Shown here: positions 402-49,618 of the stretch, piece after piece
How positions within the stretch are numbered: position 1 is the first letter of the stretch
How the letters are laid out: each line of letters begins with the position of its first letter
Assembly: GCA_964252035.1 (NCBI GenBank)
Contig: OZ176207.1
Strand: one strand, 5' to 3'
Length of the DNA: 64,000 nucleotides
From: Podarcis erhardii
Taxonomy: Eukaryota
The notes under the pieces: generated by a model
Database searches by the model: none
What the model was told of the DNA's origin: nothing
What the model saw: the letters and a program-made list of their open reading frames with translations, nothing else
Position numbers and translations under genes: made by a program

Positions 402-566
402 GTTATGAAATTACTGGCATGGAAAATCTCCCTAAAGGACCAGGGATTATTATTTATCATCATGGAGTTGCTCCTCTCGGCTATGCCTTATTTGTGGCTA
501 GATATTTTTTAGAGACGGGGAGAGGGTGCTTTTCATTAATTCATCATGTCGCGTATTGGATACCAG
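402..566 (+). CDS. TMEM68: Paralog A catalytic-motif exon (165 nt)
   Basis: Acceptor ttttcAG at 400-401, donor GTaaat at 567; same length as the equivalent exons of B and C. Confidence 0.92.
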
Positions 567-3500
567 GTAAATTATTTAAATTTAAATCATGCTTTTTTAC
601 TTAAAACATGTAAAATATGACATAAAACAATGCTATAAGCTATGAAAAAAATGCTTTAAATTATAAAGCTGTATATGAGGAAAGCAGGTAAAAACAATTG
701 ATAAATAAAATAGCAGCAACAGGTGAAATAGTTTAGTTAGTGCAGATGAAGATACTTTCACACCAAGTCATTGCTAGTAAAAGAGAATGAATGCAGGATG
801 AATAATTATTTCCAGTTCAAAACTGAGTCAGCAGAAATGGTCTCCATGAAGAAATGCTGTGCTTTTCTGCCTACATTCTTCCCCAGAGATCTAAAAACTG
901 AGGAATCTGGATAATGTCATCTGATTCCTATGCTATGACTACAAGCTCTCATGTAATAATTGCTGTTCACTTTAATACCAGAACAGGGAAAGGCGTAGGC
1001 TTTGGGGTGTCTAAGTTGATGATTTCCTCAAGTACAAAGAGTTTTGCAAAGTTCAGTCATTAGTAAAGATGGGATATTCCTTACTGGAAAGAACAACGCA
1101 AAGTATGGGAATCTGCTTGGGAGCATCTGCACTAGCAAACCACCTGTGCAAAATCCTCTGTATTCAAACACCACTGGGTGGCAGCTGGGATGCAGTGGGA
1201 GCTACAGCTAAGGAAAAGGGCAGAAACCCAAGTGAAGCCCAAAAGACATGTCCGTGGCTTTCATAGCAAGTCCAACCTATCACCAAATCTGCACACAGAT
1301 CCCAGAAAACATGGCCCCACCCAAACACATAACCAATCAAGCACTCCCACACACATCTTTTATGCCCCCATGTGACACTGCAATCAAACACATGTGGCAC
1401 CCTTGCTGTAGTGTTCATGGCCCTCCACTGCCACTCCCCCCACATCATCTTCCTCTGCACGCACACAGCAGCCACACCAGGAAACTATGACATCACAGAA
1501 AGGTCATTTAAAGGAAGGAAGGAAGGAGGCCAAAGAGGCCCAGTAGCACAGAGCGCTGTTTGGAGTTTTTCCACTAGGTTAATTAATGCAGCATATAACC
1601 TCCACCCATATATCTGTGTACCAATCTCTGCTGGAGGTGGCGGTTTTCCATCAGCATAGTCTCCTCAGTTCCTTCTGTGTATCTCCTCCCCTCGCCTCCC
1701 GTGTGTGTGTCTACTGTATCCAAAAGCTCTGTACCCTAAAGGCATTGAAATTCCCCATCCATGAAATCATAGTTGAAATGGATGGCAGAGAGCTATGCTT
1801 GTGATCCATAATAGTGCAATATCTTTGGAATAATGGCACTTGTATTGTATCCACAGTATTTCCTAAATAAGTTTCACAAAAAACAGCATTCTTCTATTTG
1901 GAGCTTATTTTTTTCAGGGCTGCAGATGTTTTATTATGTGATCAGGTTGAAATCTTACAAGAAAGCTGAAATTGTGGAAATAATGAAGAAAGGCCATTTA
2001 CTGGGCATTGCACCTGGTGGAGGTAGAGAAGCACTGTATAGTCACGATTACTGCATAATGTGGGGTAAACGCACAGGTTTTGCTCAGGCAGCTTTGGAGG
2101 CGAAAGTGGTGAGTGATCTTTGTGCAATCTGCATTGCCTTCACGATTATCCTAGATAAGACGTAATGTGTTGACATCCTTGATCCAGCATCCAAAAAAGC
2201 TGAGGATGGCAAATATCCTGTTTGGGGGTCAAATGATATCTGGAGTGCCACAGGTCTCCCCACCCCTGCTTTAAAACAAACCTACTGAAATTCATGACAT
2301 TTAAAAAAGAAAAGCATTTTCCTTTTATCTTTCTTTTTATATATAATTTTATTTTAAAAATTTGTTTTAATGTTTAAAATACTCATTTTACATCCTTAAG
2401 ATATCAATGACTTCCTTTCTTCTCCTTTGATAGTTCATTTTACATATCATAAATCCTTGCATATTTTACAAAAACTATACTATTCAGTTTTCCATTATTG
2501 AATCCATCAAAACACATTACACTGCAGAATTTATCTTAATGCTGCCAGTCATCATCTATTTCAAGATCCTTCTCATAATATGTCTGGAGCACTCAGTCTT
2601 TGATATTTCTAGAATAAAAAAAGAACCATACAATCTCCTGGAAATGTTTTCTTCTTAGCATACGGGGATTTAACCCTGAAAGCATGATCAATAGCTTGAT
2701 GTACCTCCTGCTTTTGAGTCTCAAGAAGATTTGCAAGTGCCTCAATTATTTTATCCCTTATTGCTTCACCAGATTGCTGAGCAATAGATCTAAATCATAA
2801 AAGCATCTCTTTTTGCCTCAATTCAATTAAAGCCAAATTGTCTGCCAATAGTTCCCGAGATGCTATAGCTGCCGCCAGTTGAATCCAGGGGGGAGGAGTA
2901 TAAAAGTTTGAATGCTTTTTCTTGAAAAAGAAAGTTTTCAAAGTTCTTATCCCCCCCGTCCCCCTCCTTTTATTTCCGATGGCAGACTTTCTTTGTTTCC
3001 TTCAATGCTTCAGCCATCTGGTTCCCATGCAGGATAGTCACCAATTCTAGAGAAGACTCCCCTTTTGTTCTCCTGGAAGTTCGCCAAATTAATCCAAATG
3101 CTAAAGACACTTGAATAATAAATCCCCTTTTCCTTGGTTTTATTTTCTGGGAAATCTGCTAATCAAAAACTTGACCTGATTGAGCAAAACCAATGTGATT
3201 TTTGGATTCAGCGCATCAGATTCGTCCTAAATCAACTGAAAAAACGCAGACAACAAATTTGTTGTTGACCAGTGTAATAAATCCCTTTTTCCTTCGTTTT
3301 ATTATCTGGAGCCCAGAGATGACAGCTTGACAGCCGGGTTAGGCCAGCACCAAATGGAACCTCAGACCTGTTGGGAACTCGTTTTTGACTTCCACAGGAG
3401 CCCTCAGAGTCCTGGTCATCCCCAAGACCTTTTTTGGGTGCTCGTTGCCTACGAGCTGCCGCCAAACTCCAAAATGCAGCGGACGGTTGGCTGAACCTGG

Positions 3501-6500
3501 CTTCCTTTCCCCCTCAGGGCAAACCAGGAAATTCTTTTTTCCCCTTCAATTCCTGAAAATCTGGAGGACAGCTTCTGAATTTCTTCATCTGAGATATTTG
3601 AATAAATGTGTCAGGAATTTTAAAGCCAATTACATTATCATTTATGAGTTGCTTCTCATTATAATCTCAGATGTGAAGCATTCTTCATAGTCCATAACAA
3701 AAATAAAGGCAGGATGGTTTGGACAAAATAATTATCCACTCCTCACCTTTCTTTTCATGTTTGTTTCATCTTTTATTTTTTTAGCCCATCATCCCTATTT
3801 TTACACAAAACATTTGTGAAGCATACAGGACCATTGGAAAGACAAGTAAGTTAAATACCTTGGTTAATCAAGAGATCTCAGGCAATATACATTTTAATAC
3901 TATAGAATGATCTTTTAAAAAGAATATCTATTTACTACTCACGAATAGATTTTATAGGGACATGGGTGGCGCTGTGGGTTAAACCACAGAGCCTAGGACT
4001 TGCCAATCAGAAGGTCGGTAGTTCAAATCCCCGTGATGGGGTGAGCTCCCATTGCTTGGTCCCTGCTCCTGCCAACCTAGCAATTTGAAGGCACGTCAAA
4101 GTACAAGGTAGGTACCGCTCCAGCGGGAAGGTAAACTGCGTTTCCGTGCACTGCTCTGGTTCACCAGAAGTGGCTTAGTCATGCTGGCCACATGTCCTGG
4201 AAGCTGTCTGCGGACAAACGCCGGCTCCCTCGGCCAATAAAGCGAGATGAGAGCCGCAATCCCAGAGTCGGTCACAACTGGACCTAATGGTCAGGGGTCC
4301 CTTTACCTTTACTTAATATATTTTATTCCATGTCCACTTATCTGCAAAACTGTGCTGCCTGCCTCAGTACTGAGTGAACATGCCCTTGCTTAGTTTTCTA
4401 TTAGATTTAACAGAAAGCTATAATCGATAAATGTGGGAGCAACCCTAAAATGGAGGGGAACTGAACAGGAAACATACCATATTCTGTAGTCTATTGTACA
4501 CAACTTATGACTGATTGCAAAGAGCTGAGAAGAGCTGACTGAATATCTTGTACAGTGGTACCTCAGGTTAAGTACTTAATTGGTTCTGGAAGTCTGTACT
4601 TAACCTGAAGCGTTCTTAACCTGAAGCAGAAAGTAATGGAAAGTGGATTGATCCGCTCCAGATGATGAAAAAACACCCCCTAAAATAGCAATTTAACACA
4701 AATTTTACTGTTTCACAAGACCATTGATCCATAAAATGAAGGCAATAATCAATGTACTGTACTATAAAATAAATAAGACAGTATTTTAGATGAAAAGAAT
4801 TAAAATTTATTTCCAAACTCACTGTTTGGAGCGGGCTCAGGGTCCTCTTCCACAATCACAATTGGCTTGGCTTTTGGCATTCGTGGAGGCCTCAGAGAGC
4901 TCCTGGAGCCCAGTCGCAGAGCCTCTGCAGCCACCATGGATGTCGGGGCTTGGCTCCCGGCATTCGCGGAGCCGCTCTAGGCAGCGCAGATGTCAGGGCT
5001 TGGTTCCCTGCATTTGCAGAGGCCCCTGACAGCTCCGTAGGCTCTGCCGATGTCTGGGTTTGCCTCCAGGCAATGTCCTCCGAGAGCTTGGAAAACTTAC
5101 TTCCGGGTTACAATCCTTCGTAACCCAAAAAAACGTAAGTTGAAGCGCTCGTAACCCGAGGTACCACTGTATCTCTTTTCCCAAGCACTCATATTATTTA
5201 ACTCTTCCTCTCTTCCTATTTATTGCAATTGCTAAACACTGAGAATTTCAACTAATTTCAGATTTGATATGGTGTCGCTTTCCTTCAGAATCTTCTTCCA
5301 TTTCATACACAGGGCTGACAAAATGGCTGTATGATAAAACTCGATGTATGCTTCTTCCCATTTACGGAGGGTTTCCAGTGAAATTGAGGACATTTATTGG
5401 AGAACCCATCCCATATGATCCAAATATAACAGCTGTAGAGCTGGCTGAAAGAGTAAGTTAACTCTAAACTTGGAAGTTTAAAAGCAGAATGTTTCTTTTC
5501 CTCTTGGTTTCTCTCTCTTTCAGCTCTAAATTGTATTGTACATATTGATTTCCTCATTCTATATGACCTGATATAGGGTTCATTATATATACTTTTGTGC
5601 ATTATGCCCATCACTCAATTTCCCCTTTCCTTAACTTGTTGAGACTAATTAAATGGGGGGGGGGGAACTATGTGGTACAAAGATAGATCTGCTCATGCAA
5701 TGGGATTTCTTCTTCCCATTATACTAGGGTGGACTATACAAAATAATCAAATAATAGATCTTATTCTAATTGCTCCTCATGAAAATTTTGGTCAATTGCA
5801 TAAAAAGTTGTTGAGCTGAGCTTCTTTGGGCCATTGGTCAGAAAGTTGAGATTTGGGGGGGGGGCGGTTGCCCTCTCCCCACCCCAACTTCCCACAGGCG
5901 CAAAACAGAACCAGAGCCACTCACGTAGGCACCTGAAACAGCGCACACACAAATTCCCCCCCCCAACTCGGATATTTCCTTAAAATGGAAAAAAGAAACC
6001 CCCCAGATGGCCCCAGAAGGACCAGTCTGGGATTTCCCAAACATATGGCAACCCTACACAATGTGCCCCAGAATTTGCCTGACAAGGTGGCTCCAAGCCA
6101 CCCTAGTGCTAATTTTTGAGGATATGGAGAGGGTTGAAGAGGAAGACAATTTATTGTACATGTTGATATATGTTGCATGTACACACTGATGTGTGTTTAA
6201 GAGAGCATTGGATACAGCTTTGTTAAACGGTGCCATAATTCCTGACCAACTACCAAGCTATCAACTCTGAACCTGCAACACATATACTGTAATTTGTTAT
6301 ATTTCATGCATCAGGAAGCTCCTATATGAGATGCCGTTTCACTGAATACAATGTCAAACACAGATACCATTTGTATGGTATTACATTGCATGACTTATTC
6401 TACCTGCTCCTGCAGGGGATGATACACTTTCCCCCTTCCTCCAGGAAAACATTGGACTCTGAATCCCAAAGGGAGGGGGCTAAGGGGAGGAGCATGTAGG

Positions 6501-7228
6501 GTCCTGGTGGCTAATGGGAACAGGGTGGGAACATTGTTTAGTATGCCTGATCCTTCTCCAAGCACTTTCTGCTTGTTTACTTGCTGCATCAAGCTTCAGG
6601 TTTTGATTGCCTGTTTAAAGGGGCAGATAAGAAATTTCTTTCTGCAAGGGGTTATGCCTTGGTTGTCCTGAGGTTCACTCCTTTTATCCTACATTGTAAC
6701 AACCATGCAAGGTAGCTACTGTGTACAAAGCAGCCCAAGGCACATATGTTTGATTGTTTCTCTGCCATTCTCATACAGTGCTTTTGGTAAACATACAGAG
6801 AGTGGGCTGGATTCACTGAGAGATGAGCAGTTTCCTAGTGGGGGTTCCTCACCCTGGCTGCTCTGGCCCAACCCTCCATGTTGAAGAAACCACTTTTGAG
6901 GGTTGAGAGACAAGGACTCTCATGATGCAACACATCTCTGTGTACAAAGTCAGTTGTGTATCCCAGAAAGAAGTCACATATTGTGCTTCTATAGCTGGAA
7001 TAAATGGGTTGCCTCTGGTTCTGATCCCTTTAGCTTTTTCCTCACAGATATTAATAACTGTGAATACCTAATTTGCAATCTATTCCTATAACACAATGTA
7101 TTCCTCTGGTTTTCTTTCAACAGGCGAAGACTGCACTTGAAAATCTTCGGGATAAACACCAAAAAAGGCCAGGAAATATATTAAGAGCTCTATCAGAACG
7201 ATTTGATAAGCATTACAAAGCTAACTAG
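402..7228 (+). CDS. TMEM68: TMEM68-like paralog A (5'-incomplete; exons 402-566, 1918-2108, 3785-3845, 5313-5452, 7124-7228)
   Basis: Five GT-AG exons splice in frame to GYEITGMENLPKGPGIIIYHHGVAPLG...GHLLGIAPGGGREAL...GFAQAALEAKV-PIIPIFTQN...YGGFPVKLRTFIGEPIPYDPNITAVELAER-AKTALENLRDKHQKRPGNILRALSERF*. This is collinear with TMEM68. The first coding exon lies upstream of the window. Confidence 0.93.
1918..2108 (+). CDS. TMEM68: Paralog A exon (191 nt) containing PGGGREAL
   Basis: Acceptor ttttcAG at 1916-1917, donor GTgagt at 2109; one codon shorter than the 194-nt exons of B and C. Confidence 0.92.
2335..3560 (-). mobile_element. Degraded L1-clade element carrying ORF1 (HAL1-like); boundaries approximate
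   Basis: The minus strand reads LALIELRQKEMLL*FRSIAQQSGEAIRDKIIEALANLL...IDHAFRVKSPYAKKKTFPGDCMVLF, an L1 ORF1 coiled-coil/RRM pattern with stops. An A-rich tail follows near 2335-2390. Confidence 0.6.
3785..3845 (+). CDS. TMEM68: Paralog A exon (61 nt) PIIPIFTQNICEAYRTIGKT
   Basis: Poly-T tract plus AG at 3783-3784, donor GTaagt at 3846. Absent from the ORF track; read directly from the sequence. Confidence 0.92.
3957..4313 (+). mobile_element. Sauria SINE
   Basis: tRNA-like head gggacatgggtggcgctgtgggttaaaccacagagcc and tail gacctaatggtcaggggtccctttacctttac; matches the two other copies in the window. Confidence 0.9.
4553..5169. mobile_element. Tc1/mariner (Tigger-like) MITE
   Basis: TIRs CAGTGGTACCTC...GAGGTACCACTG with TA target duplication at 4551-4552 and 5170-5171. 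Confidence 0.88.
5313..5452 (+). CDS. TMEM68: Paralog A exon (140 nt)
   Basis: AG at 5311-5312, donor GTaagt at 5453; encodes LTKWLYDKTRCMLLPIYGGFPVKLRTFIGEPIPYDPNITAVELAER. Confidence 0.93.
7124..7228 (+). CDS. TMEM68: Paralog A last coding exon (105 nt including TAG)
   Basis: cAG at 7122-7123; AKTALENLRDKHQKRPGNILRALSERFDKHYKAN*; candidate polyA signal ATTAAA at 7295-7300. Confidence 0.9.
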   Translation, partial: AKTALENLRDKHQKRPGNILRALSERFDKHYKAN

Positions 7229-13989: not shown

Positions 13990-14470
13990 ACAAAAACCGG
14001 CAGTCTCCTGCTGAAGTACGTAGGCGCAAACAGCTCGAGGCAGCCTCACTTGCGACCGCAGACTCATCCGCAAGACTGCGAAGCTCCTTTTAACGCCAGC
14101 GCGACTCCTCCCTAGCAGACGCTTCGAGCTTGAGGCTACCTTCACCGACAACCTGCTGCGAACAGCAGCAGCCGAGCCCCTCGGAAGGAAGCGCCGGTGA
14201 GGATCTCTGGAGGCCGATACCCATTTCCTCGTGTCATTCTCCTTCTCCTTCTCCTCCCCTTCCGCCCTCCGCTAGCGACGGACGAGGTAACCGCAGAGGT
14301 GAGGCAGAAGGGCGCAGGGAGCTCCCGCCGGGTCCCCCTGCGAAGCGCCCACGTGAGGAGCTGAGGACGTCCCGTGTGAAGGAAGCTCGGCGCGCAGAAG
14401 AGCCTGAGAGGAGGCGAGGCGAGGGGAAAGCGCGCGAGCGGAGCAGGGCGGGAGAGCGGTTGATGGGGGG
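13990..14470 (+). promoter_or_regulatory. CpG island: probable promoter and non-coding first exon of paralog B (candidate donor AG|GTGAGG at 14298/14299)
   Basis: Sharp CpG/GC-rich block in an AT-rich background, ~1.1 kb upstream of the acceptor at 15583-15584; strong donor consensus. Confidence 0.6.
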
Positions 14471-15604
14471 GGGGGGAGGCGAGGGAATGGTGGAGCTGCT
14501 GTGGCTATGGAGCTGAGCAACTCTGAGAGTCAGCTGCTGTGGCTATGGAGCTGAGCAACTCTGCGTCACTCAGTCGCCCTCCCCCAACACACACAACTAG
14601 GGGACCTCCAGGTGTTTGGGACCCTGGCGTCTGTCAACTTCTACCCAACCCTCATTCCTTTCCCCAAGCCCTCAGGAGCACTCAGCCTTCTAGCACCGCC
14701 TTGGCTCTTCCTTATTCTCCCATGTAGCGCCTTTTCCTATTGTGAAGGGGAGATCCACTTCAGGGCTCCCCCAGAATGCCCCATTGGGGGACTTCTGCTG
14801 GGTGGTGCTGAAGAGCCCACCAGAGGCAGCTAGCCCACCCACGTGCTCTGAGGACAGAAAATGGAACTCTGTGCTACTTGGGTGCTGCTGGCTTCACTCT
14901 GAAGCTAGGAGGACAAGTTGCGGGGGGGGGGGGACTTTTCTATCCTATCTAGCCCATTGCAAAGAGGAACTACACTGTTAAGTCTCCAGCCCGGAACTTA
15001 AGACACAGTGGGCACCTGCACCCAGGGGGTGCCACATGCTGGGGGAAGGCAGGCACATGTGCCAAAGGAGCGTTTACCTGGGAGTAAGCTTCCTTTTGCA
15101 CAGTAGCACTTGCTCTTGAGTAAATATGCAGAAGGCAGCACTGTGAATATGTATAGGATTAAAATGATTTTGGATATGAGGTCCAAGCTATGCTTCTAGG
15201 CAGAAGAAATTTACTGGGTTACCATTCAGTACCTGCTCCATAGTGATAGTTACAACATCCTGGCACATTTGCTCACAGTATTGTGTGCCTGCTGCACGTC
15301 CTCTCCTTAATCAGCTGAACTATACGTAATGTTCTACCATCTATGGTGCAGAGAACTAGTGTTCACAGCCTCAGGCGAGACATGTGATGTAGATTGGCTG
15401 GTGTAGTTCTTGGGCAAGATAATTTGATTGTATTGCTAGTATCTCTAGAACAGGAGGAATATTTAGCAGCTCACAACTGGTTTTTCTGGAATGAAGAGAT
15501 GCTTCAAGTTTTTTTTGAGGAGACTACAGTTTGTGGTAGAAAGGGTTTCACATTGTTTTATTCTTTTTCTTAAAAAAAACCCAGGACATTATTAGTGTGA
15601 ATAA

Positions 15605-15899
15605 ATGCTACATACAACTATGACATACTCTACATGCCTTAAGTATCTGATGGAAGAATGGATTTTTCTTGAATATCTCCCATATGTGATCATCTGTTCA
15701 GTAGTGCTGGTGTTTATCAACATCCTGTTATTTTTTACAATTCCTACATGTGTGCTGCTTCTTCTTTACCTTTCTTCTTTGGTCCTCTTCATCTATGAGA
15801 GGACACATAAACTAAAAGAAGCTTATTCCAGTAAAGCATGGGATGGTGCACGACTAATTATAACATTCATGTGGGATAGACTTGGAAGATATTTGAATG
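15605..15899 (+). CDS. TMEM68: Paralog B first coding exon (acceptor at 15583-15584, exon begins 15585)
   Basis: TYSTCLKYLMEEW...LKEAYSSKAWDGAR...YLNG; donor GTaagc at 15900. Confidence 0.88.
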
Positions 15900-23180: not shown

Positions 23181-23222
<42 letters not shown>

Positions 23223-23345
23223 TGACTTGACAAAGATTAGGTTGACCCTCATTTTTAGCTCCTGAGTATGCATACGTTATTTGCAAATCAAAATGTGTTG
23301 AACTTTCAAATACTTATTGATTAGGGAAACTTGAGATGGTGTTTT

Positions 23346-23376
<31 letters not shown>

Positions 23377-35501: not shown

Positions 35502-35829
35502 ATGATAGGCCGAAATGAATCCTGTGGTGCAGAGCAGATGCCCATGTCTTACTTGACTTGCCTGCTTTACATACTGGAAGGATGGACTGGAGTCGAACAC
35601 TTGGACGAATATCTGAGTTACCTGGTCTACCTCACATGGCTCTTTGCACCATTGCTTGTAGCATTTTTACTTCCTGCACTCATCCTCATTCTTGTATATG
35701 TCAGCATTTTTATTCTTCATATTTACAAGTTACGGACACACCTAAAAGAGGTTTATTCAAATGATTTTTGGGATAGTGCAAGACTTGCAGTGTTAACTTT
35801 GTGGCATGTTCATGGAAGAATATGGAATG
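35502..35829 (+). CDS. TMEM68: Paralog C first coding exon (exon begins 35499)
   Basis: cAG at 35497-35498, ATG at 35502, donor GTaagt at 35830. Confidence 0.93.
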
Positions 35830-38800
35830 GTAAGTACATTTTTCTTATGTAGATGATATAAGCTAAATAGTCTTCAAGTATAAGGATACAAAATCCTATA
35901 CTTGTTTTCAGAAGAACTTTCCCAAGCATTTTTTTCAGTAGCACTGCATAAACTACTTTGTTATTACAGTTTCAGAGGTTCAGTACTTTTTTATTCCACT
36001 TCCTAATCAATCACATTCCTATATTCAGAATGTGTATGCGTTGTAAAAAAATTTGTTTGATTAAAGAGGAATTATTCCACTGTAGAAAGTAGCTTTATAT
36101 TTTACATTCACGTATGTTTGAGGGAGGCAAATGATAATAAGGTTTATGTTAAAGGAGCTCTTTCTGAGTTGTTCATTGCTAACTAGTTGCACCATGTATT
36201 TCCCAACCTCACTGGACTTTCTGGAGATCGTAAAAAGAAGCAAAAAACAAAATCATTTTGATTTTGCACCATCTATTACCCAGATGTGTGTTTGTGCACA
36301 CACCTCTTTGATGAGGAATGCATGGTGTGTGCATAGGAATGCATAGGCCTTTTCCTACAGGAAAGTGGAATTCTGTTGTGATTCATTCCTTTTAAGCAAG
36401 AACTGCACCAGTCTAAGAGGGTACATGAGATTCTCAAGACAATATAACAATAAACTCTTTAGCTTGTTCACTATAAATCTTGGACTACAAGGCTTTTTAG
36501 ACAAGCTTCTTGTTAGGGAGAAGTCTTGTAGAATAGACAATAATGGGGGTGCATCAGTGCTTTCCTTCCTTCTTCCCAGCTGCCAGAAATCAAGGTGTTC
36601 CTGTGAACTTTCAAAGAAAACAGGAACTTCACGTAATGAACTCTGTCTACTTTTCTTCTGCTTCAGACTACCTTAACTATTGTTTCCCAGTCTGGTATGT
36701 CATACTTATTGTCTGTTACTTTCCTGTGCTGTACAGGCACTAATATTTAGCAACTGTATTCAGGTGACGTAGTTTGTCCTTGAAAGACAGATTTAGTCTG
36801 TGTGAATATTTAAATATATTTTGAATTTATATGCCCAATGATGTGGGGTTATTTTTTTTTAATAAGTAAATCGGATTTTTTACAAAAGGTTCTAAAAGAT
36901 ACCGTGAAAGTCAATAATGAAACAATTAAAGGCTTTCTAGGCATGGTTGCTAGACTTCTTCCCTTCTTTTTGCTTTAACAATGTATGCTAATTGTAGCAA
37001 GTATATTTTAGAAAAAAATGAATAGCATGAGATTGCCTCTGAGTCTGACTAATGGAATTGGTGGCAAAGTATAGTCAGAAAAACTATAGTCTCTTTGCTT
37101 GAAAAACTACATGATGACCAGGAAAACCAGTTACGTTGTTTCAAGCCTGCAATACTATGTCTACTCATTCCCATTCAAGTCCCATTCAATTCAGTGGGGC
37201 TTTACTCCTAGACAAATGGGGTTCCAACCTCAGTCAGTATTTCTGCTCCTTCACTTGCAAATGATAATGAATAGCTTCACACTTATTTCTGTTCAAAACC
37301 TAAGCAGCCTAATTAATCCTTCAAATATCCCATAGCTCAGGGGAGGACAGACTTCAGGCTTGTGGGATTTACATTTTTTTCTATTAAAACCTGAAGATCT
37401 ATTAACCAGAGCCAGGTACAAACAGACACAAGTACTTAGAATTAATAAATTCTGAACCCAGTGACTTTGAGCATCAGAACAAAACTGAACTCTTCAGTCC
37501 CTCCACACACTAATGCATCACTTTCTGCTTCATTTCAGCACTATGCAGTAATGTGGGTGTGGGAGTCATTGCTAAACAATTGGGGATTTGGGAATCCTTG
37601 CCAATCTACTTAAATTCCCCAGAAATCTGCTGGTAGATTTTGCTCCACAGTGTCCATCAATGCCCTAGCCTAGCCTAACCTGTCATATGGAGGGAAATAG
37701 TTAAATAAAGGAAAGTATGCAATTAGGGCAGGAAAGAGGAACCTGTGGCCCTCCAGCTGTGGTTGTACTTGCAAGTTCTCTAAGCCCCAGCCAGCATGGG
37801 CTGTGGGTGTGGATCATGGGGGTTGTAGTTAACATTTGAAGAGCCTGAACTTTTCTGTCCATGACATAGGCCATGATATAGAAATCTTCTGTATTTCTGT
37901 TCAAGCCAGCAAAACCTCTTAGCCACAAATGCTGTGACCCAAATTCTAAGAAGTTGGTTATTCAGGATTAGAGTGGCAAACTGCAAGAACCACCCACATG
38001 TGTTGCCTCTTGATTCACTGGAATCTTTGATTGTCCTTGAATCTTCCTGCCACAATTGACATCCTCTCCTGCCACACCAGTGTGGCAAGCCACACCGCTT
38101 GAGAACCACTGACTTAAACCATCGGTCTAATAAGGCACATATATATGCTTTTGCCAATATATTGGTCTAGCATTTTATGTCATTCTCTTCCCCCATCCCA
38201 AGCTTCACAATTATGTGGACCTCCAGAGGAAAGAGTACAGAAAAACTAGTGGGGAAGATGGAAGAATGACTGTGGAAAGTCCAACAAGTTCAGCAAGTGT
38301 GTAATTATAGCAATTATCCACATTCATTTAGGGAAGTGGGGAGAAGCCCTCTTTATGGAAAAAGGCATTTTACAACTTTTAAGAATTAGAATAAAAATAA
38401 TTAATGGACTGAGTAAAGGTAAAGGGACCCCTGACCATTAGGTCCAGTTGTGACTGACTCTGGGGTTGCGGCGCTCATCTCGCTTTATTGGCTGAGGGAG
38501 CCAGTGTACAGCTTCCGGATCATGTGGCCAGCATGTCTAAGCCGCTTCTGGCGAACCAGAGCAGCGCACAGAAACACTGTTTACCTTCCCACTGGAAGGT
38601 ATTTATCTACTTGCACTTGGATGTGCTTTCGAACTGCTAGGTGGGCAGGAGCAGGGATCGAGCAACAGGAGCTCATCCTGTCACGGGGATTTGAACCACC
38701 GACCTGATCGGCAAGTCCTAGGCTCTGTGGTTTAACCCACAGCGCCACCCGCGTCCCTGTAATGGACTGATATATACAAATATTAAGTTGTGTATTATCA

Positions 38801-41800
38801 GGCAAATGCTGTAACAAATTCAGTCTGCTTCTGTTCTTAACCTGATAGTCCCCAGTAAATGGCTGGCATAGGACAAAGGTAGCTAATCACTTTAAACCCA
38901 AGGACTGCATTCAGTTTTGACCAACCTGCTTGAGGGTTTGATGCCAGAGGAGAGAAAAAGAAATTCATGTTCACCTGCATGCACTGTACTGCAGGGCACT
39001 TGTTCACCAATGAATCTCTGTCTCTGGCACACACCGCAACCATGCACATACAGGGATCCTTTCTTTTTCTTCCCCTGTGCAACTCTTCATTAATTCTACA
39101 GGTGACAGCACCCTTTGTCTTTGTCCTCAGTGCAACTTAATGGCAACAGCAATCTCTCCATTAACTTGACTGGAGAAGGGAAAAGGCCTTTGGTGGGCCA
39201 TGTGAGGCTGTCTTGTGGGTCTGATCTGGTCCATAGTTCATAGATTCGTCACCACTGCCACAGGATACAATAGTATACCTTAAGGCAGTTTACTGTCAGT
39301 GTACCATAAGAGCAGTGCTAGGAAATATTTGTTGTGCCAGATGCTTACATGTTTTATGCTGGTGCTTAGCAATGTGAAATATTATTTTGCCGAATATGAC
39401 CACCTCTTTTATTCATGTATCTCTATGGTCTCCCTTATTCCTGAGTTCAGATCTTTGTAGTTGTATACAACCTAGATAGCATCAGTTTTATAGACCGTTA
39501 TTCATCTCCCTTTTCACCTGACCACTGATACTGTGTTAGTGGCACAGGTTGATGAACCTGAAAGTCAATAGGAACAACAATTAGGACATGCAACAAAAAG
39601 TTGCCGTGTATCCTTGCCCCCCCCCCCCAAATAACAGGGTTGTTCTGTACTCTCTGGGTGCTATAAGCTGTAAGGGCTTAAGCAAGCCATCTCAAGCGCT
39701 TAAGCAAGCCTGTCATTTCATATGAAGCTAACTTTGGTAACAGGTTGTGCTTCTCTGGTAATTCATTATCCAAATTTAAAAAGCATACTTAGTTTTTAAT
39801 ACAGCACAGGACCAACTGTTGTAAAGTAGTTGTACAATACCCACAGTGGATGAAGCAGAGCCTTTAGCAAAGTGTAATGGAAGAGTGGTTTGGCCAGGAT
39901 TCTTCAGGAAAACTTGGAAAGGAATGGGGTTGAGACAGCTACCCAAGGCAGATCCCAGAATAAAATGACATTGCCAACCCAAAAGTGAAAAACTAGGTTT
40001 AGAAAACCCGAATTTACAGTGGGTGGGCATGATGTAACCACAAGTTTTTGATGTTGAAAATTATTGCAAAGACATGTTCTTTCTTGACAAAGAATGAAAT
40101 TTATGATATTTTATTTCTTGTAATGAAAATTTTATGTATTTTGGACATCATGGGGGAAAATGGCTACTGGGCAGCCATTTCGTACAACTTTCCTACAATC
40201 CATAGCTGTAATAGAAAAAAATTAATGAAACAAAGTTGTATATCTTAAAAATTAAAATAATATTGGTTATTATAAGTTCTTTTTGAAAGTGTAGACTTGT
40301 TTTAATTTTGGGAAATTTGAAGTTATTACAGCTATGGATTTTCTAAACCTAGTTTTTCCACCCAAAAAACTAGGCTACAAGTGCATTTTAAAAAAAATTT
40401 TAAAAAAATAGGCATTTATAAAATCTTTTGAGTGCTGGTGTATTTTTTTCTTAAATCGTCATCATTTTATTGAGCTCTGTGTAAAATTTCAATCTGATAC
40501 TTGTTTATGGAGAAGAAGAAGAAATGTACACAAGGGTATCTTATGCCGAGGGTCTCAATAGGGACAGACAATGCAGATTTAACAAAACTTCGAAGTACTA
40601 TAAAATTAAAACCGTTTGAGATGGAGGGAAAAATTTAAGTGGGTTTCAAATTTCATCAACATCTGAGATGGATGGTGACATGACCTCATTGAAATGACAT
40701 GGAATGACCCTTTGCTTAAACTCAGGTTGATGACGGTTCTTGGATATTCTTAAGCATTTCTATTTGGCTAAATAGTCAGGTGTTCACATGAATTTATCTT
40801 TACCTGTCTTGCAGCCCAGGGCTGGTCCAGGCATTAAGCAGAGTGAGACTGCTGCCTCAGGCAGCAGAAGCCCCCAAGGCTGTGTCCTTATGGGCACCCC
40901 TTCTGCCCCACTGCCTCCACCGCTGCCATTTACACTGATTTCCAGCGAGATTTTTCTTCAAATTGGCACCATTGCTGGAGGCACCAGGATGGCACTTCCT
41001 GTTTCTCCTTAAGCGAGTAAAATGGGACACTCCACCCCTGTTGCAACCTACCTATGTGATGAAACATAATTATAATTAGATTATGAAACAATGAACTGAA
41101 GGTTGGGAAGTTCCCCTATTCAGATCTTGCCTCAGGTGACTTGGTAAACAATTTTGAGTATAGCACAATAAACATAGAAAAATTTCTAAATATTTTACCC
41201 TACCTTGCCTTAACCTGAAATGATTTTATTCCATTCTTTCTAAAAAAAAGCCCAGACCAGTACACTACATTTAAAAACTTATAAATGATCGACATGGAAG
41301 GGCAGTGAAATAGCAGAACTACTAAATTCCATAGCCCGTTTATGGCCCAGATCCCCAGGTGAACATTTTAAAAATTGGTATCTGAATAGTGACAGTGTGG
41401 GGGACAACCACATTTCCTTTGGGAGGGAGTTCCATGTTCAGGGTGCTGCCACTGAGAAGGCCACTGCCTTAGACCACCACCAATAAGCCAGGCCACTGGT
41501 TGGATCTTGGAACACAGACCTGTAGGTATTGGGAGAGCACTCCCATTGGGAGAGTAGGTATTGGAAGGAGTACTTTGCTCCTAAGTCATCTGGGGCTTTG
41601 TACACCAGTACCAACACATTAAAATAGGCCCAGTAGCATGCAGTCAGCCAGTGCAGAGTTCTGAGGATTGGAATCACTTGAATCCCATCTGGCTGCCCCT
41701 TTTAGGAGCCTGGCAACCACATTTTGCACTAACTGCATCTTCCAGACTATAGTTAAGGGTAGCCCCACGTAGAGTGCATTGCAGTAACAAGTCATGAGGT

Positions 41801-44800
41801 TATCAGAGCGTGGATTACTGAGACCTGCTGTCCAAGTCCATGAATTGCTATAGCTGGTGAGGAGTAACTATTCCCACTGAGGCTACTTGTACTTCCAGTG
41901 ACAGCTTTGAAATCTTGGAGAGCTCCCAAACCATGTACCTTTTTTCAGGTACAGTGCAACCCCATTCAGAACAGTCTCTCCAATTCCTGGACTTGGAAAC
42001 TCTAAATGTGAGCAGGTGGTTCTTAAAGATTAGCATCTACAGCTCCAGGTCCTCTGTGCAACAGCAACAACAAAGGTGGTTATTCCCCCACTTTGCAGGT
42101 GTTTTCAAGAAGAGGGTGTGCCCATGAAGTAGTCAGTGAAATCTTTTGAGTCAGATGGGACAGATTCCTTATCAACAGAAGAATTCCTTTTGAAGGTAGT
42201 GTAATGTTGTAAGCGGATTTTCTCTACAGATTTTCATATATGTGCTTTCATGGGGTGGAGCCAATTGTATTGGGATGATCAGATATGTTTTCAGTTGCCC
42301 ACTCTACTTGCAGAAAATGTTTCTCAGGAGCAAGGCAGAGATGGAATGAGATTCTTAATATTTGATAATGGAACAGCAGCAATGATCTGAAAAGGACAAA
42401 AGCCATTGCAATTTTGGCAGGACACTATAATTCCTCTACAGAACAGGAATGTTTTCTTTGGAGATGGACTTTATTGATACTGACTGCATTTATCAAAGAG
42501 TGCACAAGTATGTTGAAGAGTAACTAAACAAGATTATGAGATTTAGCATATGCTGGTGGAGAAACTGAGATGAACCCCCGATGGTTACCTTTGTGTCCCA
42601 AGGTAACCATATAACCCAGATTAGAAGCTCTTACTATTTTTCATTGACAGAAGCTAGTCCAATACAAGATATCATTTTTAAGAGCAATGTAACTTCTGTC
42701 TAAAGTAACAAAAGAGAAGTCAGCAGTTACCTAACTGGCAGACAAGTCAGTCATTTATGAGGGCATTAAAAAGTAGTTCAAAAGAGGCTTCCTTTCCAGG
42801 AATGTACTCAATCCTTCATATTGAATGTCCAGTTGTGATGTGGCCTTTGCTTGCCTGTCATTTGCAACTGTAGTTCTGGTGCTTCTTTGAGTAAGCTTTT
42901 GCAATGCAAAGTTGATATCAAATGTTAACCTTCCCTTCTCTTCTTAACAGGTTATGAGGTGCACGGCCTAGAAAAAATACCTGATGGACCAGCCCTATTT
43001 ATTTTTTATCACGGAGCAACACCTATAGACTTTTTCTACTTCGTGTCTGTTGCTTTTACTAAGAAGAAAAAATTCATCCATGTAGTTGCTGATCACTTCG
43101 TCTTTTCATTACCAGGTAAAAACTGTGAAATGTGATTATGATGCTTGTAGATCAGTTAAGAGTACTAACTGGACATCTGAAGACACGTGTTATGGACAGG
43201 GTTTATTTGTTTGTGTACACAGGTGCATTCATACATAAATTCAGTGAGCAAATATGCAGTTTGTAGAGTTTTAGAACAACTCAAAATGCAGAAATGAACA
43301 CTGGCTGTGTTTGTATGTCGTTTTGTTTCTCTCTCCTCCCCCCCCCCCTTACATTTATATCCTACCTTTCTTCCACCATGGAGCCCAAGGTGGTATACAT
43401 ATGATTCCCAGGCAGTTCTGCATTGAGATTCTGACCAGGCCTTGGCCCTGCTTACCTGTAGCAATGTGGTAGCTCCATGTGACTTCAGATCGCAGACCTG
43501 GGATCCATAGCTTACCATGACACATGAACACACTCACTGAGAATGTTCTTAAATTGTGGCTTCTGCATTGCAGATTTGAAATTTAACTTACTTTATTATG
43601 ATTTGCTTACTGGACTGAGTTCTGTCTTCAGTGGTGAAAATCGGTAATAATGATCTGAAAAGGGATTGACTGTACCTTTTCTAGTTGTAGCCCTTTGAAG
43701 ATGGAAACAGTATCTTTCATGACTTTTAAAAATATATCCTATATTAAAAACTAAATAACCATTCCTGAGGAATGGTTAGAAAATAAGGTGTTTCTTATTC
43801 ACAGTTGCAGCCCCATACAGATGTAATACTTAACAGTGGTTAGAATTTGCCATAGTTGTTTCCTTTACCCTTTGCTAAAATTCCCAAATGTGCCATGAAA
43901 TATATCTTGCTGTGCTAATTACCCTTCGGTGAGAGTGGTGTAGAAAAACACTGTTAAACTAAATAAAATTTAATGTGACCAAATGGAACGGTCACTTGCC
44001 AAATTATTAATTGTACCGAGAATTCTGTCTGATTACACCAAACTCTATGAAACTTTTAAATTTATAGTCTATAAAACAATTCACAAATTTTATGAAATAT
44101 AATGTGTCTTCAAAACACTAACTTTTCTAGAGTGATAATAGTAATGGTTTGTTGTTTCTGTATTAGTACCATGTAAGCCCTGCAGCACTAAGCTTGAATT
44201 GGCCCAAATGCACCTGATATGTGGAAATTAGGTAACAAACTTTGTCCTAGAGAAAAATGATGAGTCAATAGTTGCTTAAAATTATCACTATTTTGTTTTG
44301 AAAGTACCGTATTTTTTGCTCTATAAGACTCACTTTTTCCCTCCTAAAAAGTAAGGGGAAATGTGTGTGCATCTTATGGAGCAAATGCAGGCTGCACAGC
44401 TATCACAGAAGAAGCCAGAACAGCAAGAGGGATTGCTGCTTTCACTGCGCAGCGATCCCTCTTGCTGTTCTGGCTTCTGAGATTCAGAATATTTTTTTTC
44501 TTGTTTTCCTCCAAAAACTAGGTGCGTCTTGTGGTCTGGTGCGTCTTATAGAGCGAAAAATACGGTAAATGTTTTGATTAAGCCCAATATTGATGCAGGA
44601 GGATGTGAACAAGAGGTGGGTGCTGGACTGCATTTAGGTGTATAAAATCCAATTCTTTCATGGTTTTGTTCAATATTTCCATTTTTCTTTTTTGCCTACT
44701 GTTTATTCCAGATTTCTCTCATGAGCTATTTGTTTCTTAACTCTTTGCAGGTTTCAAAATCGTAGTTGAAGTGTTTCGTACTTTGCCTGGATCACAGGAG

Positions 44801-47800
44801 GAATGTATAAAAGCATTAAAGAGCGGATGCTCATTGGCCATTTCACCAGGAGGAGTTCGGGAAGCCCTGTTTGCTAATGAATACTACCCCATACTATGGG
44901 GAAATCGTAAAGGATTTGCTCAAGTGGCTATTGATGCAAAAGTGGTGAGTGTTTTCTGAGCATAAATGCAATATAACTTCAGGCATCTTAACCAAACCAG
45001 CACCATCAGTGTTGGAATCTTTCTATATGTAAAATCAACAAAGTAAAGACAGATGATTTGCTTGCTCATGTTCTTCATCCAGAGAGAACTACAAGAAGCA
45101 GAGACAAGCAAGCAGAAATTGAAACAAAATGGATGCACTTAATGGCTCTTCAAAAAATGTTTATATGGAAGCCCACCACATACATTGAGAATCTATATAA
45201 ATAATGTTTCCATTTATCCAAGTTGATCAGATCTTACATATTCCAAAGTAGTTGTATAAATGGTAAAGTATTGTGTTAGTGCCCTGGTTCTTCTGTGTAA
45301 CACCGTAGTGTATGCCAACAAAACCATCAATTTCCTGGAAATTACAGAACATCAAATAAAATCCTGAATTGTTCCTCCTGTCTTATCTTTTGAATGGCCA
45401 TCTAGACTAATGTGAATAAATGAATGTGTTATATGCAAGGCTATTACTGAAGATTTCTTAATAGGTTATGTTGCTTTCAGATGTTTTGTCTGATTGACTA
45501 TCATACAGTCTGATGGCTTGATCCATATTTTTTTTTTGGAGGGGGGCTGTCCTGGTACAAAAAAAGGCTTTAATTGTATCAGTCTTTTCATTCTGAAAAT
45601 TAATTTCATTTGCCCTTGTTTTAAATAAATAGAAGGCAAAGTCTGCTTTTTCAAATTGCATTGAGGATGAAATTAATGATCTTATGGACAAAATAATGTT
45701 TTTTAACAGGAACAGCTCACATAGAATGCTGAGAAGTACCGTATTTTTCGCTCTATAAGACACACTTTTCCCCCTCCAAAAATTAAGGGGAAATGCAGGC
45801 TCCATGGCTTCAGCGAAAGCAACGCAAAGCCAGGAGAGCAAGAGGGATCGGTGCACACCAATCCCTCTTGCTCTCCTGGCTTTGCTTTGCTGGAGAGGCG
45901 CTGCACAGCTTTCCCTCTCTGCACAGCGCTCTTTCAGCGAAGCTGGAGGAGAAATGGAAGGGGCTCCGTTTCTCCTGCCGCTTCGCTGGAGGGGCGCTGC
46001 GCAGAGAGGGAGATATTTTTTTTTTTCTTGTTCTCCCCCTCTAAAACTAGGTGCGTCTTATGGTCTGGTGCATCCTATAGAGCGAAAAATACGGTATCAG
46101 AAGTGATAAGATATTGATTGTGATCCTATATACCTTAATTTTTAGCATTCCAATTGTTTCTGTTAGAATATGCGGCTATGAAACACAAGCATTTGGGTGA
46201 AATAGATTCTTGTTCTAGTTGTGAGTAGAGTGGTTTGGTTTTCCTTTGAAAATACAGATTTACCTTGAGGGTTTTTCTTACTCCAAAACAAATTCTTTCT
46301 TTCTCTACAGAATCACATTCTAAGTTTATAGGTGTAATAATAGGGGATTCATATTATGCTGTGGCTAAAAACTCAATTTTGTGATAGAGACCCAGGTTCA
46401 AATGCCCATTCCCATATGAATCTCATTGGGTAATCTGTTTCACTGGACAGCTGTGAAAAGAGTAAGTGGGAAAATTGCACTAAGCTCTTTGGAGCAAGCA
46501 TAAGATACAAATGTAATTAATGAATGGTTTAGCATGGTTCTCTCGGCTTTCTACTCATTTAATAATCCTATAATGATACAAAGTAATCGTTAGTGTGTAA
46601 TCACTGAGGAATGCACTCTGTTATTTAGGATGCAACGCCTTGAGTGTGAGACAGAAACTGCTAACGCATGTCCTTCATCTTTACAGCCCATCATTCCCCT
46701 TTTCACACAAAATGTTCGGGAAAGCGTTCGAACATTTGGTGGAATAAGTAAGCAACTTCAGTTTTTGGGGTTTTTATATTATGCTTTCAGTTGTTACATT
46801 TATTGCTTTCCTGGTTGAACCTTTGGCTTGCTATCTTTGGTGCATATAGGGGTAAGATTTTCTTTCTTGAACGATGTGGTTGACATTTTAATCATTAAGT
46901 GCTGTGAAGTGAATATGTATTTGTAATCCAAAACATCTGGAGGGATGAGGTTGCTTTATGCTAACTCCAGCTCTACAAATCCACAAGTGTCAGTTGTCCT
47001 TTTGGAATTATTAGCAAAGCCTTAATACCTAGATATATACTGTTCTGTGTAGCAAGGTGTTCCAGACTGGTTCCATTTTTTCTTAAATCTCCTATTACCT
47101 TCCCCCCACCTATGCCTTTGACATTCAATTTTGTAAAAAAGAGAGACAGAGAAAAAGTGTAATTCACAACCATTACAAAATATAACAGAAGGCTTTGTTG
47201 CCGTTCTATCCCCTGATCCTTTTTGTTGCTTTCCTTTCTATTGTTTTCTGCCTCCACCCTATTCATGCTCAGTCCTCTCATATGTCTGCTTCTCAGCCTA
47301 GCCTTCAACCATCCTTTAGGCAGCCACCATGAATCTGTTTATCCCATACTTTAGTTTCCATACTTCATAAGTCATCTTTCTGCTCTGCTTTCCCTGTGCC
47401 TGCTTCCTGCCTTCTCTTTTTCCTAGGCACTATACAAGAGGTTTTCCCCACCCCACCCCCCAAACCAGGCTCTTAAAAAAAATAAATGGAGGGTCACTAT
47501 TGTAGTTGTTAAGTAAATCTTAAAATATTAGCTAATTGCATGTATAATCAAAGATAAAGAAGGCAGACTAAATTTCATTTAAGGGTCTTCCTAAAAGGGG
47601 TGGGGAATTTGCTGCAGTTCTCACACTTGTTTAGATATAAGTTCTGTCCCTCTTATGACAATAGCACATTGATTGACTATGGTCCTATGAAGACCTAAAG
47701 AAAGGCTAAGCAGAGAATCTACTGGTATTTATCACAGGACATGCTCCCTGTCTTATAACACAGGTATTTAAGAAAGCAGCAATATGTTTCTAGAACAATG

Positions 47801-49618
47801 ACTCTTTCCTCCAAAACAACTTTTGGAATCTCTTCTTTTACTATTCTACACTAGGAAGAGAGGTTATGTAGGACCTAAGGCTTCATTCATACTTTATACT
47901 AAGCTATAGTTTTGGATTCCTGCACTTCTCTTTTTCTTCTCACAGTCATGCAGAAGAGGAGATCATAAGTTTTTGCTTCTGTTTTCAAGTAACTGTAGTT
48001 ATTCAGTATGTTGAACCAAGAACTGTGGTTAGTGTTAACTATAGTTAAGGAAATGCAGTAGGATTCCCTAAACCAGAATTAATATCAACAGTTTGTCCAG
48101 ATTCAGATATTACTGGTTGGTGGGAAATGGAAGCAAAAGCTTGTGATTGGTGGTGGGGGTAACATTACATGCAAACACAACCTACATCTTGGAGATATTT
48201 CAGCAATTATTTCTTCTCTCTCATGACTTCTGGCTTAGAATGCATAATCTGTGCAACTAGCTCAGGATTGGATATACCTGTACATATTCCAGAACTGTGA
48301 GGCTTTTAGCTTGCATCAGTAATTTATGAGGCATTACTGTATAAACATGACTTGAAAGCCATTGCCTCCAAGATACCTTTAAAGAGTTGCATGATTTGGG
48401 CAACAGAACTTTATTTTACCTTCTATTCTCTTAAATATGTCTTCCCCCGCCTTCTTTTTAATGAACCAGAATTTCTTAGATGGGTCTATGAGAAGACTCG
48501 TTGGCCACTAGTCCCATTGTATGGAAACTTCCCTGTCAAACTACGCACATATATTGGAGATCCTATTCCATATGACCCAAATGTCACTGCTGCAGAACTG
48601 GCAGAAAAAGTAAGTTTTTGTTTTCATAATGCTGAAGTAGCAAAGTTACTATCCTAATCCTAAATAATTGTAGTGTAATATTCCTATGTTCTGAATACAG
48701 TTATGGAAACATCCCAAAGAGCCATGGGATGAAGCTGATTAATTTCATTGATTTTGAGGTGAACTGCCAAGATTGCCCAGCGGTATGCTAAATCAGTGGA
48801 GAACATTTTGGGAGGTTGTGATTTGAGAATGGGAATGGGAAAAGGTGAATTTGACCTGGCTGAGATAAAGATGCAAAGAACTAAAGAAACAAGAGAGTGC
48901 AAGGACAGTAGAATAAGGAATAATGAGAGATGGGAGAAGAGTGTCACATATCTCCTTTTGAAGATAGACCTTACAAGCTTTAAAATACATTTGTTGAAAC
49001 ATATCCAACTTGAATCTTGCTATTCTGGACTCACAGCCAGAAATTTCTCTTATTCCATTCTTGGTCATGATGCTAGAGTGTATTGTGACTTCTCAGCTTC
49101 AGGTTTTTCTGGATGATTCAGCCTGTCATTAGGCTGGGTTAAGGAAGAGGACCAAGTTTACCTTGCTACGCATATGGGGTATTATTAGAGAACAAACATT
49201 AGATTTCTTGTGGGTTTTGTTGCATATTTTGGGTCTGGACCCCATGTTAACTATTTAGCTTTGCTAACTATATGCTATAAATCATTGGATAGAAAGCATC
49301 AGAATTCTAACTTCAACCCACCTGACAGTTGCTAATACTTCGTACTCCATTTTGTGCATTTGCATCTCACAGTTGTTTTGTAATTTTGAAATTAAACTGC
49401 TGGTATCTTGGGTTTTTATTGCTACTAAAAGGGCTAAATGCTGGTTTTAATTTTAATCTGTGACTGACTGAAAGCTGTTACAATAATGAGCTATTTTCTT
49501 TTTGACCTTATAGGCAAAAAATGCAATACAATGTTTAATAGACAAACATCAGAAAATACCAGGAAATGTATTTAGAGCATTGATGGAACGATTTGAAACA
49601 CAGAAAAAAGAAGACTAG
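35502..49618 (+). CDS. TMEM68: TMEM68-like paralog C (exons 35502-35829, 42951-43115, 44751-44944, 46687-46747, 48470-48609, 49514-49618; 993 nt, 330 aa)
   Basis: Six exons splice in frame. The N-terminus MIGRNESCG resembles human MIDKNQTCG (from memory); FYHGATPIDF, VVADHFVF, SPGGVREALF and GFAQVAIDAKV motifs are present. Confidence 0.95.
38413..38759 (-). mobile_element. Sauria SINE
   Basis: Reverse complement of the SINE at 3957; 11-bp TSD TAATGGACTGA at 38402-38412 and 38760-38770. Confidence 0.93.
41380..42100 (-). mobile_element. L2 LINE ORF2 C-terminal remnant
   Basis: IPILRTLHWLTACYWAYFNVLVLVYKA...AFSVAAP matches the L2 C-terminal pattern HITPxLxxLHWLP...FKxLxLxYKA...AFSxAAP. Confidence 0.75.
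42951..43115 (+). CDS. TMEM68: Paralog C catalytic-motif exon (165 nt)
   Basis: cAG at 42949-42950, donor GTaaaa at 43116; GYEVHGLEKIPDGPALFIFYHGATPIDFFYF...VVADHFVFSLPG. Absent from the ORF track. Confidence 0.93.
44307..44565. mobile_element. Tc1/mariner MITE (CCGTATTTTTCGC family)
   Basis: TA-CCGTATTTTTTGCTCTATAAGAC...CTTATAGAGCGAAAAATACGG-TA. Confidence 0.9.
44751..44944 (+). CDS. TMEM68: Paralog C exon (194 nt)
   Basis: cAG at 44749-44750, donor GTgagt at 44945. Confidence 0.93.
45739..46094. mobile_element. Tc1/mariner MITE (CCGTATTTTTCGC family)
   Basis: TA-CCGTATTTTTCGCTCTATAAGAC...CCTATAGAGCGAAAAATACGG-TA. Confidence 0.9.
46687..46747 (+). CDS. TMEM68: Paralog C exon (61 nt) PIIPLFTQNVRESVRTFGGI
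   Basis: cAG at 46685-46686, donor GTaagc at 46748. Confidence 0.93.
48470..48609 (+). CDS. TMEM68: Paralog C exon (140 nt)
   Basis: cAG at 48468-48469, donor GTaagt at 48610; FLRWVYEKTRWPLVPLYGNFPVKLRTYIGDPIPYDPNVTAAELAEK. Confidence 0.93.
49514..49618 (+). CDS. TMEM68: Paralog C last coding exon (105 nt including TAG)
   Basis: tAG at 49512-49513; AKNAIQCLIDKHQKIPGNVFRALMERFETQKKED*. Confidence 0.93.
   Translation, partial: AKNAIQCLIDKHQKIPGNVFRALMERFETQKKED

Follow-up and report, generated by a model that had tools for sequence, protein, structure and literature searches.

Three genes of the TMEM68/DIESL family lie head to tail in a 64,000-nucleotide (nt) stretch of the Podarcis erhardii genome (assembly GCA_964252035.1, contig OZ176207.1; the whole stretch is referred to here as the window), and they raise the question of whether the family expanded within lizards or whether its copies have histories of different depth. 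It was not until 2023 that TMEM68 (DIESL) was recognized as a second route to triacylglycerol (TAG), and it has been studied as a single gene in mammals. In human and mouse, it is an acyltransferase of the endoplasmic reticulum (ER) whose TAG synthesis does not depend on DGAT1/2 and is kept in check by TMX1 (PMC10482677, PMC9916437, PMC5417663). Our analysis supports, with a probability of roughly 0.8, a reading in which three consecutive genes from three deep lineages stand at the end of a large TMEM68/DIESL-family cluster: gene C is the canonical TMEM68, gene B is a paralog at least as old as the bird–lizard ancestor, and gene A belongs to a burst of copies in lacertids.

When the window was compared with itself in six frames, we found five triplets of similar stop-free segments on the plus strand, plus one pair. 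These make up seventeen exons of three genes, all on the plus strand. Gene A (402..7228) is truncated by the start of the window, and its first coding exon lies upstream; exons E1–E5 are at 402-566, 1918-2108, 3785-3845, 5313-5452, and 7124-7228 (including the stop codon), with lengths of 165/191/61/140/105 nt. Gene B (15605..23928) has exons at 15605-15899, 16405-16569, 17579-17772, 20559-20619, 22542-22681, and 23824-23928, with lengths of 295/165/194/61/140/105 nt and a product of 319 amino acids. Gene C (35499..50499) has coding exons at 35502-35829, 42951-43115, 44751-44944, 46687-46747, 48470-48609, and 49514-49618, a product of 330 amino acids, and a 3′ untranslated region (UTR) that runs from 49619 to beyond 50499. 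Its first coding exon directly follows an AG acceptor at 35497-35498. Exon phases are identical among the three genes, every internal boundary has the AG before and the GT after the exon, and there are no stops or frameshifts. No additional TMEM68-like exons or pseudogene fragments were found in the intergenic parts or in the rest of the window.

These models confirm what had been proposed from the letters of the window alone (the sequence-only reading), namely three intact head-to-tail paralogs with shared phases, nearly equal exon lengths, and canonical splice sites. The first coding exons of B and C, which that reading did not list, are present as well. Its counts of identical residues in the catalytic exon (A/B 23, B/C 32, and A/C 18 of 56) are reproduced exactly when the split glycine codon is included; over the fifty-five whole codons they are 22, 31, and 17. 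Across the whole proteins, amino acid identity is 50.7% for A/B, 48.8% for A/C, and 55.8% for B/C. The introns had been described as sharing no visible similarity, which holds in general, except that one interspersed repeat is shared. The same structure of six coding exons in the same phases occurs in our models, in the orthologs from Zootoca and Podarcis muralis, and in a pigeon B-type gene, where the exon boundaries fall at amino acids 110, 165, 229, 249, and 296.

Membership in the family was examined with a profile built from the three exon-2 translations, which retrieved 651 proteins from a representative protein library, and with three homolog searches seeded by database proteins, which recovered vertebrate proteins named TMEM68, TMEM68-like, and DIESL-like. 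Single exons of the window match PF01553 and DAGAT weakly, below the Pfam threshold, as is expected for pieces of a domain. PF01553 scores above its gathering threshold (23 bits) in Podarcis orthologs that are 93–95% identical to the window genes, with 39 bits for the B-type protein P0414 and 29–33 bits for the A-type proteins P0428 and P0425, and a PF01553 match is on record for the 330-amino acid P. muralis gene at the position of C. Gene B shares 97% identity with a Podarcis lilfordi protein and 95–96% with its P. muralis counterpart across all 319 amino acids, and the exons orthologous to B are intact in P. muralis and Zootoca. Gene A is 88–94% identical to the Podarcis RefSeq TMEM68-like proteins P0376, P0425, and P0428. 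Both models agree with RefSeq models in congeners. For C, whose whole protein is 66–68% identical to turtle, crocodile, and bird TMEM68, no squamate ortholog was among the proteins from the three homolog searches. A 330-amino acid gene does occupy its position in P. muralis (after B) and in Lacerta agilis (after an A-type gene), and the first exon of the L. agilis ortholog is 91% identical to that of C.

We placed the three genes in maximum likelihood trees, one built quickly from 121 proteins and one built with more care from seventy-five, with TMEM68-like proteins of amphioxus and a tunicate as outgroups. Both trees resolve the same three clades. Clade I (support 96/93) contains TMEM68 of fish, amphibians, mammals, turtles, crocodiles, and birds together with C, which groups with sauropsid TMEM68 (100/97) on a long terminal branch of 0.33. 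This placement makes C the canonical TMEM68 ortholog. Clade II (100/100) unites twelve squamate proteins, B among them, with tuatara and the ‘TMEM68-like’ proteins of birds, and the B-type genes are full-length in all of these groups. Clade III (100/96) is limited to turtles and squamates and comprises a D-type squamate group, turtle copies, and a squamate-only burst (100/99), with a lacertid clade nested inside the burst. Gene A falls in this lacertid-only clade of three subclades (100/99), which adjoins the amphisbaenian Rhineura. The old divergence of the copies that the sequence-only reading proposed is borne out. Under the history that we favor, B would have arisen no later than the ancestor of birds and lizards and would have stayed directly upstream of TMEM68, head to tail with it, and A would be a young member of a burst confined to lacertids, within an expansion confined to squamates, within a clade of turtles and squamates.

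Gene order in birds bears on the same point. In pigeon, canonical TMEM68 lies 8.5 kb downstream of the B-type gene on the same strand. Two thrush gene models fuse a B-type unit and then a canonical one, in the same order as in pigeon, and in alligator two B-type units are joined within a single model. The order of B-type gene and then TMEM68 in pigeon and thrushes supports the age of B. The bird genes in question, RefSeq predictions named TMEM68-like or DIESL-like in Columba livia, Anas, and Tinamus, share with B a clade, an exon structure, and a position and orientation upstream of TMEM68. They differ from B in sequence (56–58% identity) and in setting, with two copies at the pigeon locus examined versus about a dozen genes in lacertids. 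Our literature search found incidental mentions only and no functional study of a bird TMEM68-like gene.

The window is three consecutive genes at one end of a large tandem cluster. Positions 3982-35523 are collinear with P. muralis OZ076961.1 at 93–96% identity, and the cluster genes of that species span 37.95-38.43 Mb, or about 0.5 Mb: P0377 at 37.95 Mb, P0374 at 38.14 Mb on the opposite strand, at least three A-type copies at 38.33-38.36 Mb with a period of 13–16 kb, the gene at the position of A at 38.40 Mb, B at 38.41 Mb, and C at 38.43 Mb. In L. agilis, a D-type gene is found on the same chromosome as an A-type gene, ~0.55 Mb away. Counting distinct RefSeq protein clusters gives ~10–12 genes per lacertid genome. 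The array of three put forward at the outset therefore falls well short of the real extent of the cluster. Genes of the cluster are already predicted in RefSeq under several names, such as ‘TMEM68-like’ and ‘DIESL-like’. Our literature search found no paper on the three TMEM68 clades, the squamate burst, or the lacertid group without the catalytic Asp; what is new here is the evolutionary ordering and the active-site variant, not a new kind of gene.

Several details of the cluster in these relatives are of separate interest. The A-type tandem copies of P. muralis occupy 143-6047, 11552-19143, and 28095-28741 in the local coordinates of stretch L003, and the 93–96% identity of gene A to several of them points to recent duplication or gene conversion. 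The P. muralis gene at the position of A is annotated with 282 amino acids and no Pfam match on record, whereas other A-type proteins have 311–313 amino acids, which may reflect an unfinished gene model or damage to this copy. At 49.58-49.61 Mb of L. agilis CM020422.1, 6.9 kb separate an A-type gene from the C ortholog that comes next, no B-type gene lies in this interval, and the protein cluster of B has no L. agilis member; B may have been lost, moved, or left unannotated in this species. Finally, an XK-related gene (665-amino acid product, PF09815) is annotated on the opposite strand of P. muralis OZ076961.1 at 38.33-38.43 Mb, where its model extends over B, the A-type copies, and the beginning of C. 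This model may reach too far, or else the whole cluster sits within a very large intron; we saw no XK-like exon in the window.

The catalytic dyad of the family is His130/Asp136 in human DIESL (PMC10482677) and H129/D135 in mouse (PMC5417663). Both residues are present in motif I of B (YHGAIPID) and of C (YHGATPID). In A, motif I reads YHHGVAPLG: the catalytic Asp has become Gly, and the Tyr before the catalytic His has become His. Gene A thus lacks the dyad and is a TMEM68/DIESL member by descent, not by its active site. The orthologs of A in Zootoca and Podarcis share the His-His...Gly state, as does a second lacertid subclade, which has members in Zootoca, Lacerta, and Podarcis. One further gene has Asn at the Asp position, and the third lacertid subclade retains Asp. 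B and C also retain the remaining acyltransferase motifs; motifs III and IV are intact in B and unchanged in the proteins with Gly (the Gly-group), A included.

We compared alignment columns across sixty-three proteins, setting eight lacertid Gly-group proteins from three genera against the rest. Four columns set the Gly-group apart, each fixed in seven or eight of the eight proteins: Tyr>His and Asp>Gly, at positions where Tyr and Asp are found in 100% of the other sequences; Arg>Cys just after motif IV, where 93% of the others have Arg; and Glu>Asp, where 65% have Glu. Given these four changes, A and its sister subclade probably have an altered chemistry, mechanism, or substrate, or else a non-catalytic role. 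The predicted structure of an A-type protein is confident (predicted local distance difference test, pLDDT, 88; predicted template modeling score, pTM, 0.82) and has a long helix at residues 17–61. In Foldseek searches with this model, PlsC was the best solved match, and LpxM, PatA, and GPAT were also found (E 1e-7 to 1e-3). These enzymes of the PlsC/AGPAT fold, including Thermotoga maritima PlsC (5KYM), belong to the PF01553 superfamily as A does, and they differ from the A-type model in sequence (9–16% identity), in their substrates, and in being bacterial or plastid proteins. PatA and LpxM are described as using a non-canonical acidic partner for the catalytic His, in PatA one from elsewhere in the fold, which we mention as a lead only.

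The luminal N-terminus, in TMEM68 a glycosylated tail of ~49 amino acids ahead of a membrane helix, also varies among the copies. C keeps the NES N-glycosylation sequon and both cysteines. In B, the tail starts ~9 residues later and has neither the sequon nor the first cysteine. In the A-type orthologs, ~20 N-terminal luminal residues and both cysteines are absent (the first exon of A itself lies outside the window). Compared with human and mouse TMEM68, C is alike in orthology by tree, in its 330-amino acid length class, in PF01553, in the His/Asp dyad, in a luminal tail with a sequon and two cysteines, and in having one long hydrophobic helix; B shares all of these likenesses except for the missing parts of the tail. 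The differences are that mammals have one gene and this lizard a cluster, and that A is without the catalytic Asp. B and C are most likely membrane-bound ER acyltransferases of the DIESL type that convert diacylglycerol to TAG, judging from homology. Control by TMX1 could be altered in A and B, whose luminal tails are shorter.

A comparison within clade III places the changes in A in context. The D-type genes (L. agilis P0284; snakes P0072) share the clade and the exon structure of A, and those squamate clade III genes whose position was traced share a chromosome with the cluster. D-type proteins are 80–85% identical between snakes and lizards and keep the dyad, unlike the subclade of A, which has evolved fast and carries Tyr>His, Asp>Gly, and Arg>Cys. 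Their conservation across squamates is also in contrast to the diverged C.

Recent rates of protein change in A, B, and C are high. The ratio of nonsynonymous to synonymous divergence (dN/dS) is 0.57 for A versus Zootoca (95% bootstrap 0.33-0.94), 1.2 for B versus Zootoca (0.66-2.9), 0.94 for B versus P. muralis, and 0.59 for C versus L. agilis (0.2-2.0; exon 0, the first coding exon, only). Within the window, dN/dS is about 0.3 for A versus B and about 0.27 for B versus C, with dS saturated in both comparisons. The B versus Zootoca estimate has an oddity of its own, as dS (0.038) is below the intron divergence of the same gene (0.066), with dN at 0.047; chance in small numbers, or constraint acting on the synonymous positions of short exons, could account for it.

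Other measures speak for retention. We derived the expected number of frameshifting indels in the coding sequences from the rates of short indels in orthologous introns; none were observed, although the expectation was 6.1 for B (P = 0.002) and 3.7 for A (P = 0.025). Columns that do not vary in canonical TMEM68 tend to be spared by replacements, both in B versus Zootoca (odds ratio 0.30, P = 0.016) and in A versus P0376 (odds ratio 0.33, P = 0.022), though for A versus Zootoca the avoidance is not significant (P = 0.13). The lack of frameshifts and the sparing of conserved columns argue against neutral decay. The genes are kept, with weak or shifting constraint at most residues. The claim that the copies are selectively retained stands insofar as frameshifts are missing and conserved columns spared, and it is weakened by the high recent dN/dS (0.57 in A, about 1 in B). 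All three genes have undergone fast protein evolution among lacertids while keeping their open reading frames (ORFs).

We aligned four RNA runs to window positions 44500-50499. Stranded RNA-seq reads span the splice joints of C at 44943/4>46686/7 (E2-E3; seventy-eight reads), 46747>48470 (E3-E4; 140 reads), and 48609>49514 (E4-E5; 152 reads), the first mate mapping to the minus strand in all of them, as for plus-strand RNA. Coverage runs through the 3′ UTR past 50499, and mRNA contigs from two further runs (one with a different species label) cover E2 to E5. C is thus transcribed and spliced exactly as modeled at the E2-E5 joints. Two of ~500 coding bases of C differ between an RNA run and the window (one Cys>Arg, one silent), with 1.6–2.8% difference in non-coding sequence. 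For B, eight reads contain an 18-base string that is unique in the window to the start of exon 3, joined to exon-2-like sequence, which is indirect evidence of a spliced B mRNA.

What do these results say about the origin of the three genes? The sequence-only reading was that a single-copy TMEM68 expanded in lizards to three retained paralogs, which may make specialized neutral lipids for the skin barrier or femoral-gland secretions. The copies are indeed intact, old, and retained, a large squamate-specific burst does exist, and fast protein evolution would suit lipids used in signaling or secretion. A preprint also ties a ‘TMEM68 gene cluster’ to dewlap hue in Anolis (10.64898/2026.06.28.735067), and a study of Eremias lists TMEM68 among genes under selective sweeps; both are leads only, and our search of the literature found no dedicated paper on a reptile TMEM68 expansion or a femoral-gland link. 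The part of this account that holds is A, which is lacertid-specific. C, however, is the canonical gene, and B is older than lizards, being shared with birds and tuatara and having the same position in birds. Extra copies are also found in turtles and crocodilians. Among the observations named in advance as counting against a lizard expansion, multi-copy arrays (in birds, crocodilians, and turtles) and a dN/dS of about 1 (in B) were both found, and disabling mutations were not. From the tree placement and the gene order in pigeon, we reject the idea that all three are lizard-born duplicates, and the account as a whole now looks quite unlikely. Some results weigh against our own reading of three deep lineages. 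The rooted tree puts clades II and III outside the whole canonical vertebrate clade, so any date for the duplications is tentative. However, a tree that keeps all sauropsid sequences together, with one origin of the paralogs among sauropsids, was not rejected by an approximately unbiased (AU) test (P = 0.12), and an origin on the sauropsid stem followed by fast evolution is the simpler reading, though unproven. C has a long branch, and it departs from the common residue at 13 of 118 positions that do not vary between fish and mammals. Gene A is 93–96% identical to several P. muralis A-type copies, which are themselves nearly identical, so its one-to-one orthology is uncertain. Lastly, the high recent dN/dS excludes strong purifying selection, and neutrality is not rejectable from dN/dS alone.

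The same substitution rates could mean that A, possibly along with B, is a redundant copy on its way to becoming a pseudogene, intact only because little time has elapsed. dN/dS of 0.57–1.2, the missing catalytic Asp of A, and the 282-amino acid product without a Pfam match at the position of A in P. muralis would all fit. The frameshift deficit and the conserved columns led us to reject simple pseudogenization, and we consider such drift improbable: B-type genes are full-length from tuatara and birds to twelve squamates, intact genes in Podarcis, Lacerta, and Zootoca share Asp>Gly and have kept motifs III and IV as they were, and dN/dS between paralogs is 0.2–0.3. The Gly-group paralogs, A included, may instead be pseudoenzymes that keep the fold and the membrane anchor and regulate active paralogs, for instance as their binding partners or as competitors for the TMX1 brake. 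An otherwise invariant catalytic Asp is gone, the predicted fold is confident, the ORF is kept, and the A-type proteins lack ~20 luminal residues and both luminal cysteines. The catalytic His is retained, however, and a second His is fixed beside it, which looks more like remodeling than abandonment, and the acidic partner described for PatA also speaks against a dead enzyme; we regard this explanation as possible but on the doubtful side. In the same tentative range is the idea that the Gly-group, A included, consists of neofunctionalized enzymes whose catalytic center was rebuilt in a single series of steps, from Tyr-His...Asp to His-His...Gly along with Arg>Cys and Glu>Asp, and which would make or remodel lineage-specific lipids (e.g. 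signaling or pigment-carrier esters) under diversifying selection.

Several other features of the window were recorded. Two CpG-island-like segments lie upstream of B and C. One, at 14001..14750 (unstranded; GC 0.64-0.65, observed/expected CpG 0.62-0.87), is 0.9-1.6 kb upstream of the ATG of B and is probably its promoter and 5′ UTR region; the other, at 33751..34500 (unstranded), is 1.0-1.7 kb upstream of the first coding exon of C and is probably its promoter and 5′ UTR exon. A CpG-rich stretch (24251-25000), just 3′ of the stop codon of B, contains an 80-bp tandem repeat (24510-24740; 2.9 copies, 86% match) with internal palindromic parts. The interspersed repeat family has copies at 3906-4390 (in an intron of A), 38327-38886 (inverted, in the long first intron of C), and 51248-51689 (downstream of C). 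A long interspersed nuclear element (LINE) fragment occupies 53600-56100 on the minus strand, and its ORF at 54230-54922 (minus strand) matches reverse transcriptase PF00078 (E 2e-29). Copies of the LINE flank are found at the window start (1-400, inside the first intron of A) and at 11410-11530. A plus-strand ORF of 380 amino acids (54875-56017) overlaps the LINE ORF and has no Pfam match.

For the family, the finding means that sauropsids have had at least one extra copy adjoining TMEM68 since before birds and lizards split, that squamates have expanded it to roughly a dozen tandem genes, and that one lacertid lineage has fixed a rebuilt catalytic dyad in genes that are still open. The cluster thus offers natural variants for studying the roles of the dyad and the luminal tail, and candidate genes for lipids specific to reptiles. 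If the Gly-group does prove to be neofunctionalized, the cluster would be a locus at which reptiles diversified their lipids, starting from the alternative TAG pathway.

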